Shown here: one piece after another, positions 23,453 to 29,878 of the stretch
Layout: every line of letters begins with the position of its first letter
Position numbering within the stretch: position 1 is the stretch's first letter
DNA from: Carpediemonas membranifera BICM
Lineage: Eukaryota; Protista; Fornicata
Direction: 5' to 3'
DNA: 64,000 nt
Assembly (NCBI GenBank): GCA_019828565.1
Contig: JAHDYR010000007.1
Span: 853,333 to 917,332, forward strand
Made by a program: the position numbers and the translations under genes
The notes under the pieces: generated by a model
What the model was told of the DNA's origin: nothing
Seen by the model: only the letters and a program-made list of their open reading frames with translations
The model's database searches: none

Positions 23453-24511
23453 CTATTTACATCTGTCCCTGTCGGCGCCATAAACTGTATAAAAGGCGTT
23501 CCACAGATCCGCGTTATGGATGCACACTGTCCCGCCGCCCCTGCTGTACTGACTGGTATTCCTGTTGATGTCGCCGATGCAGACCTTGGCCACGCCCGGG
23601 TTGAGAGAGATGGCGATCTTACTGTGGTCCTTGGTGTAGTGGTAAGGCTCACAGAAGGGGGGGGCGACGTTGTTGCTGTTGACCACGCTAAACGCACTCG
23701 TGGCGTTCACACCATGGCAGACAGAACCGATGAACGGCCTCATCCAGGTCTCTACCACTAAATCTGACTTAAACTCGGGTGCCACGCCGTCGTCGTAGAG
23801 GTCCTTGCCCCACTGGCCGCTCTTGCTGAACATCGTGAGGGGCACGCGAGAGGACGTCTCAATGTTGGTCACCGTGAGCTGGTCGTCCTCTTCATAGTCG
23901 TTGCTGAGGAGTCTAGTCATGTAATCGGGGTTCCCCCCGGTGTCTCGGGCGGACCCGATGAGGTAGACCTTGTTGTGGCGCAGGGCTGTGGTAATCTCGC
24001 CAAGAGTGGCCCAGCCGACGGACATGCAGAAGAAGGACTGCCCGAAGTCGAGCTGGGGGTCGGGGAAGAGGTACTTCTGGCCGTTGCGGGGGTGGGGGAA
24101 CCGGGGCACTGAGTGTGGCATCCAGAAGCCGCCCCTGTCGTCGGAGCTCCAGGCCATGACGCCCTTGGCATGGGCATAGCGCGGCTCCTCACCGCCGTCG
24201 ACCGGCTCGTCGTTATACATGACGTAGCCGATGTCCTGGTCGTACACCTGGTTGATGGTGCGACTAATGTGGTTGTCGGGGGCAGTGAGCCTCTTCTCGC
24301 TCAGCTGCCAGTCGCTGTGGTTCTCATCGATGAACATGTAGCGATCTCCGTCCTCAAAGCCGCTTTCATCGGAAAGAATCGGCATTTTGATGGCCACGAA
24401 CCAATCGACCTCCTTTCCGCTCTCATCGAGACAGGAAAGGGCAAAAACTGGCTTGATACCAAACGAGAAGAGTGAAAGAATGAGAACGAGAACGACAAAG
24501 AACAGCTTCAT
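23453..24511 (-). CDS. DNASE2: Deoxyribonuclease II (acid DNase, secreted/lysosomal)
   Basis: Signal peptide MKLFFVVLVL, then SCLDESGKEVDWF, YNDEP, HAKG, FWMPHSVPRFP, GQSFFC, KDHSK and CIGDINR...RGGGTVC. Both HxK motifs are intact. Confidence 0.93.
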   Translation of the reverse strand: MKLFFVVLVLILSLFSFGIKPVFALSCLDESGKEVDWFVAIKMPILSDESGFEDGDRYMFIDENHSDWQLSEKRLTAPDNHISRTINQVYDQDIGYVMYNDEPVDGGEEPRYAHAKGVMAWSSDDRGGFWMPHSVPRFPHPRNGQKYLFPDPQLDFGQSFFCMSVGWATLGEITTALRHNKVYLIGSARDTGGNPDYMTRLLSNDYEEDDQLTVTNIETSSRVPLTMFSKSGQWGKDLYDDGVAPEFKSDLVVETWMRPFIGSVCHGVNATSAFSVVNSNNVAPPFCEPYHYTKDHSKIAISLNPGVAKVCIGDINRNTSQYSRGGGTVCIHNADLWNAFYTVYGADRDRCK

Positions 24512-24809
24512 CGATCCTCGATTAGTGAGCGTGAGATAGGTGATCCAAGATCCGTTGAAATCTCTTGAATATCTAGCGGAAGGCCAGTGGGAGGCCAGTG
24601 ACGTTACTGGGTTGTCTGGAGCCCTTGGTCGGCGGTCTGCTTGACCTGGGAACCTCGTTGCGTGATACATGGCGGACTAGGCTTGGGTTACTCCCAGCCC
24701 GGCACACCACTGGCCATATCTAGTGTGCTGGATCAGCTCCGGGTCCCATTGTCATCACTCGCCCACTTAGGCGATACAACAGAGTGCAGTTTAGCCAGGG
24801 TGATCGCCG

Positions 24810-27800
24810 ATGAACAGTCGGAAAGGCGCTCTCGGACGTCTATTCGATTCCAGTGTTGATTGGAATCAGAGGGTTCGGCATTACAACGCTCAGTACAGCG
24901 GCAGTTCCCAGATCACAGCGGAGCTCGACTCTGTCGATGAGCAAACGATCTACGGCCTACGGAAGTTCATGGCTGATACTAGTGCTCAGTTTGAGCTCGA
25001 GGAGTCCGATTTTGTTGAGTTCAAGCATGTCCGTGACACGGGAGCCCACTTCTCCTTCGAGGCGCATCGTGCTGTAACTGCATTCCTCAACGGCCGTGGG
25101 GGCGTCATCATCTTCGGTGTCACGGATGCCCTACAAGTTCTCGGCCTCCGCCTCACTCGCCAGGAAGCCGAGGCGACCGCGAGACGCTGCATGGACGAGC
25201 TCGGCAAGAAGATTGAGCTGTACACTCCTGCCCTGGAGGTCCAGAGCCGTGTCATCGAGGTTAGATCGCCCGTATCCCACGGCCGCAAGGGCAAACGCCG
25301 ACCCAAGCACGTCATCCTCTTTGCCGTGCCCATGTGCCGCCAGTCGTTGACCTCGCGAGTCTTCTTCACTCTCGAGGGCATCGGGTACGCCCGCCTAGGC
25401 ACTTCCACGGTCACGCTGTCCACTGCGCTGACCATGGACCTCCAGCCCCCGCCAGGCCATGCCGCGGCGGCCTCTCAGGCAGCCCGCCTCCCCATCAACC
25501 GACCCGAACAGCGTGAGGCCTTGATCAAGAAGATCCATAACGCCCAGATCCTCTTCCTCTCGGGTGAAACGGGCTGCGGCAAATCCTCTCAGGTGCCCAA
25601 GATCCTGATCGACTCAGCCCTGCCCTCGAGCGACGGCAAGAAACGGCCGCTGAGAGTAGTGATCGCCCAGCAAAAGAGACTGTGCGCCATAGCACTCGCT
25701 AAGCGGGTGTCACAGGAGCTGGGGGCTCCTATTGGCACGCGGGTGGGCTATCACATCGGGGGCCGCAAGGTATACTCCTCGAGCACGGAGCTGCTGTTTG
25801 TGACGACGGCCATGCTGCGGGTTTACGCTACATCCGGCTCTTTACGTCAATTTCAAGTAATTATCCTCGACGAGGTCCATGAGCGCGACATGGATACGGA
25901 CCTCGCCCTGTTTTACATAAGGGAACATATAACATCCCGACCTGACCTCCGAGTCATCCTGATGTCCGCTACACTCGAGATTGAGGCCATACAGGCCTAC
26001 TTCTCCTCACACGTGGCCTCGATGACCGCCCACCACATCCCAGTCGGGTCGACTCACCCTGTCACAATCCACTACCCCCTTGACAACAAGCGGTTCGTCC
26101 AGGATCATGCCATCGACCTTACTGGCTTCGACGTTGCCCGAGGCAGGCTTGCCCAAGAAGTCATGGATGGCATGACCGACGTCATAGCCGCCTGGCACAG
26201 CAAGTGCAGACGGGAGCTGAAGCCGTCTGACCCCATCCCCGCGGTCCTCGTCTTCCTCCCCGGCCTGGGCAATATCCTCGAGTTCGGTGCAGTTTTACGT
26301 CGCCAAGGCGACCAGCAGCGGATTAAGATCTGCATGCTCCACTCGTCTGTTGACGGGGCGACCCAGCAGGAGGCCCTCCAGCCTGCCCCACGCGGTGTTC
26401 TCAAGGTTGTCCTGGCCACGAACATTGCCGAGTCATCTCTCACTGTCCCCGACATCGGCTGTGTCGTCGACTCCTGTCTCGCCAAGACCACTGTTGTCCG
26501 GGCCGGCCAGTCGCTTCTCACCGAGGTCTGGGCTAGCAAGAACGCTCTCAAGCAGAGAGCCGGTCGGGTTGGCAGGGTCATGCCAGGCGAAGTTTACCGC
26601 ATGATCCCCCAGTCGTTCGAAGCCACACTGCCCCAGACAACCACCCCAGAGATGGAGCGGGTCGAGCTGGAGTCTGTTGTTCTCAGGCTGCTGGGCTGGC
26701 GCCATGGTGACCCTGGCGCCGTCCTCAGGGCATGCCCCGCCCCGCCGTGCACGGACAACTATATGGCCGCCATGGCAAGCCTCATCCAGTGCAGGGCGCT
26801 CGCGGTGCTGCCTGACGGCAGCGCCATGCTCACACCGTGCGGGATGCTCATGGCCAGCCTGCCCCTCCCGCTCCCGGCAGCCCAGCTGATATTGTACGGC
26901 CTCGCCTTCCAGTGTATCGATGAGGCTTGCGTCCTTGCCGCCCTGGTCTCACGCCAAGGCCCCATCAAGACGCCCCTGGCCGAGCCCCGCAGGTCCATGG
27001 ACGCGCTGCTGAGGTTCAGCGGCGGTACGAGGTCAGATATCATCGCGAACTTCAACGCCTATTGCTGGTGGCTCGAAAACCGAACCGACTGGACGCCCGA
27101 GACGGAGCCTGTGAAGCTCGAGGAGGCTTGGCTCAGCCCGTTCCACATGCGAGAGCTCGACGACATCGTCATCCAGCTCAGGTCGACCCTGTCGCTGTCA
27201 GGGCTCTGCGCCCAGCCGCGTCGCCTCGATAACCACCGCAGGAACGTGTTTATGAACTCCGCGGCGATGGAAGAGACGCGTGTAAGCTCCGCCCCTTCTT
27301 CTGAGCGGCCCACCTCGCGAGCACTTGGCATCAGCCGACGATTGGACCAACTGGCCGCTTCCCTGGCCCAGGCCGAGATCGACGGCCACGACAACACCAC
27401 CATGGAGGGCCAGGTCGCCAAGCTACTCGGCGAGCTCTCCGTTGACGACATCGCGGACTCCCTGCCCGAGCACGCCGAGACCATGGCCACGCTCGCCCCG
27501 TTCACAGCCTCTACGGTCGCCCCTGACGCCTCGGGCTGGATGGACTACAGTGGGGGGCATTTTACCCCTATCAGCATGTTCCCCGGCCTCGAGGCCAAAC
27601 GCCGCGCCCTTGTTCTCATGATGCTGTTGGGCGGTGCGAACATCACGAATTGCTACGGCGTGGCTGAGGCGAGCAAGACCACCTTGGGCGAGAGGTTTTG
27701 GAAGGACTCGCAGGTCGAGGGGTGCCCCAGGGAAGCTGTGCTCATCAAGCCCGTGCCAGCCGCCATCGCAGACCCTGACCAAGCATTCGCCGACCTGAAC

Positions 27801-28814
27801 CGTCGACTGGCGGAAGTCAACCCGCGAGACTTTTCTGGACTCACGCTGCTGCCCGCCCCGACCCGCGACTCCCTTCTGGTCAAGACCCGACGTGACCCCT
27901 ACCCGCCCCGAGTTGTCCCAGAGTTCGACCTCTCTATCCAGGCCAGACTACTCGCAGCTGTGGCAAGGGAGGCATACTCTGACCTCCCCCTGCATGTCGA
28001 GGGCAGCCTGGTCTCCTCAATCAACACGGCACTCAAGCCTGTGTTCGAGACGGCCGGTCGGCATCATTCGATGAGCGGGCTGAGTCTCGTCAGCCCAGTC
28101 ACCGCCCTGGAGCCCACCGCATCGCTCAAGTGGGGCGAGGGTTTGCTTGTGTCAGCCAAGCCGTTCTTTGGAAGTCGGTCGGTCAGCCTGCACGCGAACA
28201 CTCTCTTCCCCTTCGACCTACCCGCCCCGAGACTATCGGTCCTCCTCACATTCTTCCCCACGACGCCGGTCTCAACCCGCGTGCTTTATGAGGGGAAGTT
28301 CCACATGGTGCAGTGCAGTGGCAGGTTGTTCAACCGCGGCTGTGACCTGAGGGCGACAGTGGACACTGAGACGCTGGATAGAATCACGAGTATCAGGAGA
28401 TACATATCGGATTCGCTGGGGATTATGACTGCTGAATATTTATCCGATAATCGGGATGATATCACGATTGACGAGATCCGGGACCTCATGGCCAAACGCA
28501 GGAGTGCTATCAAGGCGGCAGTCAATCATACAAGTCACAATCTGACACCTGATCGCGCGATTGACAAGTTATATCGCGTCTTGACAGACATCAAGGTTTT
28601 GAACACACAACATGTTGTTGCAACGAACGCCCAGCGTATCAAGGGCGCCTCCGTCGCTCTGGACACGGCTTCCATCGGCAAGAAGACTCTTGTGAAGAAA
28701 TCAGACCCATCGTTTGACTGGAGGAAGAGCGGCGATGTGAAGCGAAGGGCGATCAAGAAGGCGACGAGACGCAGCAATGCGTGGAAGAAGCGGCTGCAAA
28801 CGAGCGATGATTGA
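24810..28814 (+). CDS. Schlafen/AlbA_2 domain fused to a DEAH/RHA helicase (Spindle-E/TDRD9-like)
   Basis: N-terminal EESDFVEFK...AFLNGRGGVIIFGVTD..V.GL is an AlbA_2 signature. Helicase motifs GETGCGKSSQ, DEVHER, MSAT, VFLPG, ATNIAESS and QRAGRVGR follow, then an HA2-like region. Confidence 0.88.
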   Translation: MNSRKGALGRLFDSSVDWNQRVRHYNAQYSGSSQITAELDSVDEQTIYGLRKFMADTSAQFELEESDFVEFKHVRDTGAHFSFEAHRAVTAFLNGRGGVIIFGVTDALQVLGLRLTRQEAEATARRCMDELGKKIELYTPALEVQSRVIEVRSPVSHGRKGKRRPKHVILFAVPMCRQSLTSRVFFTLEGIGYARLGTSTVTLSTALTMDLQPPPGHAAAASQAARLPINRPEQREALIKKIHNAQILFLSGETGCGKSSQVPKILIDSALPSSDGKKRPLRVVIAQQKRLCAIALAKRVSQELGAPIGTRVGYHIGGRKVYSSSTELLFVTTAMLRVYATSGSLRQFQVIILDEVHERDMDTDLALFYIREHITSRPDLRVILMSATLEIEAIQAYFSSHVASMTAHHIPVGSTHPVTIHYPLDNKRFVQDHAIDLTGFDVARGRLAQEVMDGMTDVIAAWHSKCRRELKPSDPIPAVLVFLPGLGNILEFGAVLRRQGDQQRIKICMLHSSVDGATQQEALQPAPRGVLKVVLATNIAESSLTVPDIGCVVDSCLAKTTVVRAGQSLLTEVWASKNALKQRAGRVGRVMPGEVYRMIPQSFEATLPQTTTPEMERVELESVVLRLLGWRHGDPGAVLRACPAPPCTDNYMAAMASLIQCRALAVLPDGSAMLTPCGMLMASLPLPLPAAQLILYGLAFQCIDEACVLAALVSRQGPIKTPLAEPRRSMDALLRFSGGTRSDIIANFNAYCWWLENRTDWTPETEPVKLEEAWLSPFHMRELDDIVIQLRSTLSLSGLCAQPRRLDNHRRNVFMNSAAMEETRVSSAPSSERPTSRALGISRRLDQLAASLAQAEIDGHDNTTMEGQVAKLLGELSVDDIADSLPEHAETMATLAPFTASTVAPDASGWMDYSGGHFTPISMFPGLEAKRRALVLMMLLGGANITNCYGVAEASKTTLGERFWKDSQVEGCPREAVLIKPVPAAIADPDQAFADLNRRLAEVNPRDFSGLTLLPAPTRDSLLVKTRRDPYPPRVVPEFDLSIQARLLAAVAREAYSDLPLHVEGSLVSSINTALKPVFETAGRHHSMSGLSLVSPVTALEPTASLKWGEGLLVSAKPFFGSRSVSLHANTLFPFDLPAPRLSVLLTFFPTTPVSTRVLYEGKFHMVQCSGRLFNRGCDLRATVDTETLDRITSIRRYISDSLGIMTAEYLSDNRDDITIDEIRDLMAKRRSAIKAAVNHTSHNLTPDRAIDKLYRVLTDIKVLNTQHVVATNAQRIKGASVALDTASIGKKTLVKKSDPSFDWRKSGDVKRRAIKKATRRSNAWKKRLQTSDD

Positions 28815-29878
28815 ATGGCGATGGGGGGTCCGCGCGTGCATCTTATTAATGTATGGTACTGTTAAAGCTCAGGCTGGGAGTGACTTGTGTGGGGAGAGAA
28901 CACGTAAAGCTCATATAAATACGTAAAGCAGAGCTCAGCAGAGTCACCTCGACAGCTGCCGTGTGTTCAGCGCAGCGATCTCAGTCCGTCCAGGCATGCT
29001 TACCAGCTGTGGCCATCGGCTGAGGGGGTGAGTCATGCCGACTTGAACAAGTCTGAATCCAAGCAGTTGATGCAGACGGTCAGTCCAATTCAGCTTCAGC
29101 TGAACTTGATCCTGCGATGACAATGTTGCTAGACCATCCACCAGTCGGTATTCTTGCCACACCACCCGAACCCCGAAGCTCGAGTCGACTCGAAGGCACG
29201 TTTCCAATGAGATCCCGAAGACAGCTATCCAACAAGTCATTTTTCACCCTCCGTGCCCGCCGTGCTGGGGCTTCTCTCCTGACGGATCACAACAGTTACC
29301 AAACAAGTATACCAACCACACCAACTGAACCCAACGCCATCAAGACTGAGACACAATAAAGCCAGAACGACAGCCTTGTCGCCGGAGCGGGGAAATTAGA
29401 AGGTGCAGGCACCCGCGCCAGCAGAGGCATTGTAGACCCAGCAGTTGCCCTCGGCAAAAGCAACGGCAATGTCGAACTTGAGCCGGTGGTTGTCCCAACG
29501 ACTCGGAGACTGCGGGTCATAGCGAGACGTGGTGCCCGCCATTGCCGCGACCCAGGCCGAAGACTGCACCAATTGCCTCCTCCGGCGGGTAGTCGCCCAC
29601 TTCTCTTCCACGGAGCTCATATTCATCCCCGTAGGCGCTCTCCACGAGCAGATTCGAGACGTCGTCCGTAGCGTCCCGGTCGGGCCATATATCATGCACC
29701 AGAAGGCACTGGACAAGGCCCTGTGAGAAGGCCGCTCTGATTCAAGGCTGGGTAGGTCGGATCCGATGCCTGGGTCGAGGATCCAGAGTCGCGTCAAAAT
29801 GACCTGCGGCATTTACGATAAAACATAAGACGGCACGGTCTTCTAACTATTAAAACATGAAGTCACGGCAAGTCATGC

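Follow-up and report, generated by a model that had tools for sequence, protein, structure and literature searches.

A Schlafen nuclease-like domain joined to a TDRD9/Spindle-E-type DEAH/RHA helicase in the metamonad Carpediemonas membranifera

Introduction

Can a Schlafen-type ribonuclease (RNase) share one polypeptide with an RNA helicase of the DEAH/RHA class and, if so, what would such a chain do in the cell that encodes it? The question is raised by a gene of Carpediemonas membranifera, a free-living anaerobic protist belonging to the metamonads. The gene lies on the plus strand at positions 24810-28814 of the 64,000-nucleotide stretch analyzed here (the window; contig JAHDYR010000007.1 of assembly GCA_019828565.1, positions 853,333 to 917,332). 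It consists of a single intronless open reading frame (ORF) of 1334 codons, without internal stop and with the terminal stop included in the coordinates, and its predicted product carries an N-terminal AlbA_2/Schlafen nuclease-like domain followed by a superfamily 2 (SF2) helicase.

In both bacteria and mammals, characterized Schlafen/AlbA_2 domains serve as the RNase effectors of proteins that also contain a sensor module, and the helicase domain of SLFN11 gates the transfer RNA (tRNA) cleavage activity of that protein (PMC13056530). The design in which a Schlafen RNase is joined to an NTPase or helicase sensor is therefore already known, but a DEAH/RHA helicase as the partner was not found described. 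A preliminary description of the window, made from the sequence alone, had not recognized the architecture as one described before, and our literature searches, which retrieved no description of a Schlafen-DEAH/RHA fusion, agree with it. In this work we examine the domains of the predicted protein, its relatives and its genomic setting, and we put forward, with a probability of roughly 0.45, that it is a Schlafen endoribonuclease coupled to a helicase within one chain and employed in RNA surveillance or defence.

The nuclease domain

The N-terminal domain spans residues 65-205 (25002-25424). The Pfam SLFN_AlbA_2 model (PF04326) matches residues 65-174 with an E-value of 1.3e-9 and 39.1 bits, above the cut-off of 25.3, which confirms the initial assignment of the N-terminus to AlbA_2; the match reached 43.3 bits in a six-frame search of the genome. 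The Ex4ExK motif, named as the catalytic motif of bacterial Schlafens (PMC13056530), is complete (E65-x4-E70-x-K72, 25002-25025) and is followed downstream by D106 of the string GVTD (25125-25127), the third carboxylate of the Schlafen triad. A phmmer search of the Protein Data Bank (PDB) aligned residues 60-135 with the C-lobe of human SLFN5, pairing E65, E70 and D106 with SLFN5 E191, E196 and D233, which correspond to the catalytic triad of rSlfn13 (E205/E210/D248; PMC8789055). Cleavage-proficient Schlafens have an additional lysine (K212 in rSlfn13) that is absent from SLFN5 and mSlfn2 (PMC8789055); K72 corresponds to this lysine, and SLFN5 has none at the aligned position. With these residues present and aligned to the SLFN5 triad, the acidic catalytic pattern is intact, as had been proposed. 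In an alignment with the few detectable AlbA_2 relatives, E65, K72 and D106 are invariant and E70 is nearly so.

The AlphaFold2 (AF2) model of the N-terminal 232 residues, built on an alignment of 8 sequences, reached a mean predicted local distance difference test (pLDDT) value of 45.6; its order of strands and helices is compatible with AlbA_2, and the model was unusable for fold searches. Because of this low confidence, membership in the AlbA_2 fold rests on the profile match and on the language-model look-alikes of the domain, which are AlbA_2 clusters at 0.83-0.85. The protein contains only one AlbA_2 unit, with some 60 helical residues upstream of it; this leader (residues 1-60, 24810-24989), which has no family assignment, is helical in the low-confidence AF2 model and partly kept in the orthologue introduced below. 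The two-lobed horseshoe and zinc finger of mammalian Schlafens were not found: PF04326 matches once, and residues 175-235 contain a single Cys, whereas the zinc site of SLFN5 is of the H/C/C/C type (PMC8789055). The single unit therefore indicates a "prokaryote/SAMD9-style" domain rather than the two-lobed, zinc-finger core of mammalian Schlafens.

Relatives of the N-terminal region are scarce. A phmmer search with residues 1-230 against 1.84 billion representative proteins retrieved six proteins in all, among which only the orthologue has a helicase, and a word-based search with the N-terminus of the orthologue returned the orthologue itself as its sole match. Two near relatives of the AlbA_2 domain combine it with other modules in rare architectures, one having 3 S1 RNA-binding and 2 AlbA_2 domains (P0123) and the other HEPN/Toprim_N with AlbA_2 (P0124). 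Another protein of the representative library (P0121, 2337 aa) carries AlbA_2 in tandem about 20 times (20 stretches in Pfam, E 1e-155).

The same domain could instead be a non-catalytic accessory that binds nucleic acids and recruits or orients the helicase, which would then be the only enzyme in the chain. SLFN5, which keeps the carboxylate triad, binds nucleic acids and shows no nuclease activity (PMC8789055), offers a precedent for such a role, and DEAH/RHA helicases commonly bear N-terminal dsRBD, R3H, S1 or RWD domains, as they do among the matches obtained here. We nevertheless regard this alternative as distinctly unlikely, for the query keeps the Ex4ExK lysine of the cleaving Schlafens that SLFN5 does not have, E65, E70, K72 and D106 are all retained in the orthologue at a domain identity of 38%, and the catalytic residues have been lost exactly in the paralogue whose helicase motifs are also dead (see below).

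The helicase core

Pfam places a DEAD domain at residues 234-394 and a Helicase_C domain at residues 494-590 of the same continuous ORF, which bears out the single-chain combination of Schlafen domain and helicase noted at the outset. RecA1 (25509-26039) contains motifs I (GETGCGKS, residue 252), Ia/Ib, II (DEVHE, 354) and III (SAT, 386), and RecA2 (26217-26609) contains motifs IV-VI, with TNIAESS at residue 537 (V) and QRAGRVGR at residue 582 (VI). The motifs are intact, and they identify an SF2 helicase of the DEAH/RHA group, not an SF1 helicase as in group III Schlafens. All of the strings quoted in the preliminary description are found in the translation: ESDFVEFK at residues 65-72, GVTD at 103-106, VGYHIG at 312-317 and VPDIGCVVDSCL at 545-556.

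After the orthologue, the best matches among 5.8 billion proteins are animal TDRD9/Spindle-E proteins (about 32-35% identity across about 40% of the query), followed by DHX36 and DHX57. In the PDB, Spindle-E (9nhs_G) scores 248 bits in one 568-residue stretch, as compared with 219 for DHX29, 213 for DHX36 and 205-208 for DHX9/MLE. Signature residues set the query and TDRD9/Spindle-E apart from DHX36, DHX57 and the spliceosomal paralogues: the former share a Gly in VGYxxG where the latter have Arg, AESS(I/L)TVPD stands against AETSxTIDD, and DxCL against DxGK or DxGL.

The relationship was further analyzed with a maximum-likelihood tree (LG+C20 PMSF, 53 rows, 555 columns, 1000 ultrafast bootstraps), which was built without named YTHDC2, DHX29, DHX30 and DHX9 sequences. 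A 21-row group is split with 100/100 support from DHX36, from DHX57/ucp12 and from the organism's own spliceosomal-type paralogues, and an earlier quick tree in which long branches were kept gave the same split. The group is made up of 15 TDRD9-family rows, the query pair, two Tudor-less helicases and two C. membranifera paralogues. Within it, the 15 TDRD9 rows are monophyletic (100/99) with the query outside, and support is only 88/82 for placing the query with the Tudor-less helicases, the two paralogues included. PDB scores, signature residues and the 100/100 split thus uphold the proposed affinity of this helicase with Spindle-E/TDRD9 over the spliceosomal DEAH proteins. The designation "TDRD9-like" accordingly stands as a statement of type and falls as one of orthology, given that the query lies outside the animal clade, lacks a Tudor domain (Pfam searches of the full chain and of C-terminal pieces found none) and belongs to a metamonad.

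Other DEAH sequences of the genome were noted in passing. Two very divergent paralogues, L016 (G000:C1:296085-297533, 1221-aa frame) and L009 (G000:C11:323270-324718, 1165-aa frame), have no HA2 or OB Pfam matches; the tree places them on the TDRD9 side, yet they lack the TDRD9 signature residues, and their placement is possibly due to long-branch attraction. The DEAH-like segments L013 (G000:C63:173977-174753) and L014 (G000:C8:965389-966162) are identical over the aligned columns, with zero branch lengths, which suggests a recent duplication; the copy on C63 seems to be divided between two reading frames.

The C-terminal half

About 500 residues of C-terminus had been left unassigned in the preliminary description, and this holds today for only part of them. 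Residues 621-801 (26670-27212) constitute a winged-helix and ratchet (HA2) module. They are the only confident segment (pLDDT 75-95) in an AF2 model of residues 582-1334 built on 30 aligned sequences, and Foldseek matched them to the winged-helix and ratchet domains of DHX36 (E 3.5e-9), HrpA, Prp43, Spindle-E and DHX29, with E-values from 1e-9 to 1e-7; the orthologue, in addition, has a Pfam HA2_C match. Past residue 801, nothing was detected by Pfam (E up to 10), by phmmer against the PDB or with a two-sequence profile. The segment that follows, residues 802-915 (27213-27554), is a poorly conserved and probably disordered linker, unalignable with the orthologue and with AF2 pLDDT values below 50.

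Comparison of profiles proved more informative for the remainder. When the C-termini of the two Carpediemonas proteins were aligned with 14 TDRD9 C-termini using hhalign, residues ~1110-1208 (28137-28433) showed a weak similarity with a score of 31.6 and an E-value of 0.006, whereas 60 column-shuffled controls averaged 16.7 and did not exceed 24.5. The block with which they align comes after the Tudor domain in TDRD9, and the query segments LLVS...SLHANTLFP...LLTFFP pair with LLVA...LRNTTLMP...LLFAP of TDRD9. This C-terminal block of TDRD9 matches the OB/C-terminal domain of the DHX36 type (E 7.6e-4), and when the query C-terminus was compared directly with OB domains of the DHX36 type, hhalign gave no significant match (E 0.25). 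The language-model look-alikes of residues 880-1334 are all OB_NTP_bind clusters, at 0.90-0.92. Residues ~1110-1208 are thus probably, though not proven to be, a diverged version of the OB-like C-terminal domain seen in TDRD9, a remnant shared with TDRD9/Spindle-E.

Between linker and OB-like region lies a conserved stretch, residues 916-1109 (27555-28136), with about 30% identity to the orthologue and no family match, so that here the earlier label of unassigned sequence remains apt. Judging from its position in the alignment, it is probably, again short of proof, an insert of some 190 residues at the point where TDRD9 carries its Tudor-containing insert. A MAFFT pairing of residues 905-1010 with the TDRD9 Tudor domain was rejected as spurious, there being neither a Tudor Pfam match nor an aromatic-cage pattern. 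The protein ends in a Lys/Arg-rich tail (residues 1301-1334, 28710-28811), read directly from the translation and not kept in the orthologue, which might conceivably serve in nuclear targeting or RNA binding.

Distribution and conservation

The sole full-length relative of the protein is P0002, an orthologue of 1464 aa with the same Pfam architecture that sits on a 16.9-kb contig of GCA_002919055.1, a second Carpediemonas-like assembly. The combination of Schlafen and DEAH/RHA domains was found in these two organisms only, among billions of proteins searched, and the two loci share no synteny. The query and P0002 are 45% identical over the first 875 residues and 30% identical over the last 430. 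Since a Prp43-like helicase is likewise 45% identical between the two organisms, the first 875 residues of the fusion appear to be under purifying selection comparable to that acting on a core helicase.

The genome of C. membranifera also contains a degenerate paralogue (G000:C15, L029:2161-6552, plus strand, 1463 aa) whose helicase and HA2 modules are colinear with those of the query (25% identity, E 1e-29). Its P-loop is kept, DELQT replaces DEVHE, motif VI is lost and the AlbA_2 remnant has lost all four catalytic residues. The architecture must therefore have existed in this lineage long enough for a duplication to occur and for one of the copies to become a pseudo-enzyme.

Expression of the gene was assessed with a set of contigs (X1) that can be called transcript-like only, their RNA nature being a guess based on uneven depth and on empty intergenic stretches. 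X1 contigs lie on 24819-28946 at a depth of 3-9, with none in 24528-24818 or about 28947-29593, and neighbouring genes attain 187x (a DNase II gene) and 41-72x (the downstream gene). One of them, at 25101-25517, crosses the junction of AlbA_2 domain and helicase, and no splice joints were seen. These observations are consistent with one low-abundance, intronless transcript. The check for a single transcript suggested in the preliminary description is hence answered in part: the contigs cover the ORF, including the domain junction, but they are fragmentary and their coverage does not prove that the transcript is one.

The fusion could in principle be an artefact in which neighbouring genes were joined by an assembly error or through a missed stop codon or intron. 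The ORF, however, is continuous, the same architecture recurs both in a second organism, whose short-read assembly is independent, and in a diverged paralogue located on a different contig, and the X1 contig across the junction has no joints; a gene-model artefact is effectively excluded.

The rate of divergence and the expression data bear on a different alternative, namely that the protein is a housekeeping factor for the processing or decay of tRNA, ribosomal RNA or messenger RNA, which would be a lineage-specific stand-in for lost canonical factors and have no role in defence. A divergence from the orthologue equal to that of the Prp43-like helicase, together with low, even-depth expression in what is apparently RNA from ordinary culture, would suit such a factor, and many canonical nucleic-acid-processing complexes are known to have been lost or replaced in C. 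membranifera (PMC8516963). We consider it an unlikely explanation all the same, because searches of billions of proteins found the combination in only two organisms, it is evidently dispensable in other fornicates, and characterized members of the families to which both halves belong act in conflict with selfish nucleic acids.

Genomic context

A second AlbA_2 gene was identified at G000:C23:165750-166157 (L004:3233-5356, minus strand). Its 708-aa ORF contains an SLFN_AlbA_2 domain at residues 67-202, with the catalytic E..EFK kept, followed by NB-ARC/AAA_16, and its predicted product is an NLR-like or SAMD9-like Schlafen-STAND protein.

The genome also encodes elements of RNA silencing, in the form of two divergent Piwi-domain Argonautes (G000:C7:87108-88037 and C65:23790-24737) and one RNA-dependent RNA polymerase (RdRP; G000:C6:763156-764388). 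No RNase III domain was detected in the genome with PF00636 or PF14622, and no RNase III signature motif occurs inside a real ORF; two matches to the signature, at G000:C8:644135 and C8:795528, do not share the frame of any real ORF and were discarded as chance occurrences. The PAZ model has no match in the genome, not even in the Argonautes, and the fact that it missed their own PAZ domains means that absences in this divergent lineage must be taken with care. As far as gene content goes, C. membranifera possibly possesses a Dicer-less toolkit for RNA interference.

This setting suggests a further alternative, in which the protein substitutes for Dicer: the Schlafen nuclease would trim or dice precursor RNA presented by the helicase, for the benefit of the two Argonautes and with the RdRP supplying substrate. 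One chain would then unite the functions of PUCH, a Schlafen-fold nuclease, and of Spindle-E, a helicase, which are separate in animals. Apart from the two Piwi-domain genes, the RdRP and the failure to detect RNase III by either model or by motif, this interpretation draws on the Spindle-E/TDRD9 type of the helicase, Spindle-E having been solved with a PIWI protein (PDB 9nhs), and on a housekeeping-like rate of conservation that fits a core pathway component. Several points speak against it. The absence of RNase III comes from hidden Markov model and motif searches in a very divergent lineage where PAZ searches missed the Argonautes, Pfam reveals no Tudor or other known PIWI-binding module in the protein, and most characterized Schlafen/AlbA_2 nucleases cut tRNA and do not make guide RNAs (PMC13056530). 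On balance we judge a Dicer substitute to be doubtful, and the more specific proposition that this protein supplies the missing nuclease for small-RNA production, acting without Dicer and in one chain as the equivalent of PUCH plus Spindle-E, to be improbable. Still, with Argonautes and an RdRP kept and Dicer apparently lacking, the gene is a testable candidate for an unconventional nuclease of RNA silencing.

In the window itself, the gene is preceded by the DNase II gene mentioned above (23453-24670, minus strand; Pfam E 1.7e-82), which is about 40 times as abundant in X1. Its contig ends at 24527, short of the ATG of the longest ORF at 24670, so the real start may be further downstream, in which case the two divergent genes would be separated by a gap of about 290 bp. 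Loose ends without a match in the window (125 and 255 letters) occur on two X1 contigs, at 28946 and 29594, one just downstream of the Schlafen-helicase gene and the other at the start of the next gene. A scan for bacterial promoters and terminators was set aside, the host being eukaryotic.

Discussion

The reading that we favour, a helicase-coupled Schlafen endoribonuclease engaged in RNA surveillance or defence, is backed by several observations. The catalytic residues of both modules are kept in the orthologue, the same genome reuses AlbA_2 in an NLR-like AlbA_2-STAND protein, and the helicase is of the TDRD9/Spindle-E type, whose family works on RNA to silence transposons. Under this reading, the helicase module would bind single-stranded RNA and translocate 3' to 5', like other DEAH/RHA enzymes. 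It might then operate as a sensor that licenses the Schlafen RNase, in the manner of SLFN11, which is activated by single-stranded DNA on its SF1 helicase domain, or alternatively as a motor that feeds unwound RNA to the nuclease. The Schlafen RNase would act as a metal-dependent endonuclease, on tRNA or on the foreign or transposon RNA that has been bound, and the degenerate paralogue, with the catalytic residues of both modules lost, may be a regulatory or scaffolding partner. The "unwind-and-cut" role in defence or small-RNA biogenesis advanced in the preliminary description is, by analogy with these systems, plausible.

Several considerations weigh against our interpretation. The AlbA_2 fold is poorly modelled (pLDDT 46), and the lack of nuclease activity in SLFN5 in spite of its triad implies that the residues alone are no proof of catalysis. 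With one AlbA_2 unit instead of a two-lobed core, activity may require dimerization. Across the two loci, no conserved gene neighbourhood points to defence, and the combination of a core-helicase evolutionary pace with expression in ordinary culture is atypical of immune genes engaged in an arms race.

Schlafen RNases are emerging as ancient immune effectors mounted on many sensors, to which the query would add a translocating DEAH/RHA helicase. The helicase core has implications of its own: the TDRD9/Spindle-E type, usually deemed an innovation of the animal germline, has Tudor-less relatives in a metamonad, which bears on the origin of the piRNA helicases. Should the small-RNA interpretation turn out to be true, the pairing of a Schlafen-fold nuclease and a TDRD9-type helicase with Argonaute silencing would either predate animals by far or have arisen twice.

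Comparison with known systems

Among known systems, PUCH, the nematode piRNA-precursor nuclease, resembles the query in its Schlafen-fold nuclease, there in a context of small RNAs and transposon silencing, and differs in being multi-subunit and without a helicase. Dicer and Cas3 also place an SF2 helicase on one chain with a nuclease whose target is the nucleic acid handled by that helicase, yet the likeness is one of functional analogy only, for their nuclease folds (RNase III and HD, respectively) are unrelated to that of the query and their helicase subfamilies differ.

In SAMD9/SAMD9L and the NLR-like AlbA_2-STAND proteins, as proposed for the query, AlbA_2 is the effector part of a large protein driven by an NTPase, which is a STAND switch in those proteins and a translocating SF2 helicase in the query. 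The sensor-effector fusions of prokaryotic Schlafens (pSlfn), Cash and SLFN-pAgo have in common with it a single AlbA_2 unit, an Ex4(E/D)xK motif and a large, variable partner domain. PMC13056530, which tabulates 55 architectures, names in its main text histidine-kinase, HTH, DUF5929, Ig-like, DUF262 and TBP-like domains as the common pSlfn partners, and a DEAH/RHA helicase does not appear among these common partners.

TDRD9 and Spindle-E are akin to the query in their helicase core, which is its best match, in signature residues, in their side of the tree and probably in the OB-like C-terminal segment; the query, in turn, has no Tudor domain, falls outside the animal clade and bears a Schlafen nuclease that TDRD9 lacks. 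The group III Schlafens (SLFN11, SLFN13) likewise have an N-terminal Schlafen RNase (Ex4ExK plus Asp) and a helicase on one chain. Theirs, however, is an SF1 helicase, accompanied by a SWADL/linker domain and a two-lobed zinc-finger core, whereas the query has an SF2 DEAH/RHA helicase and one AlbA_2 unit, with no SWADL/linker. Relative to the long Schlafens, the fusion in this metamonad looks like an independent, convergent event, and it would represent a second invention of the "Schlafen plus helicase" design of the mammalian SLFN11-type proteins.

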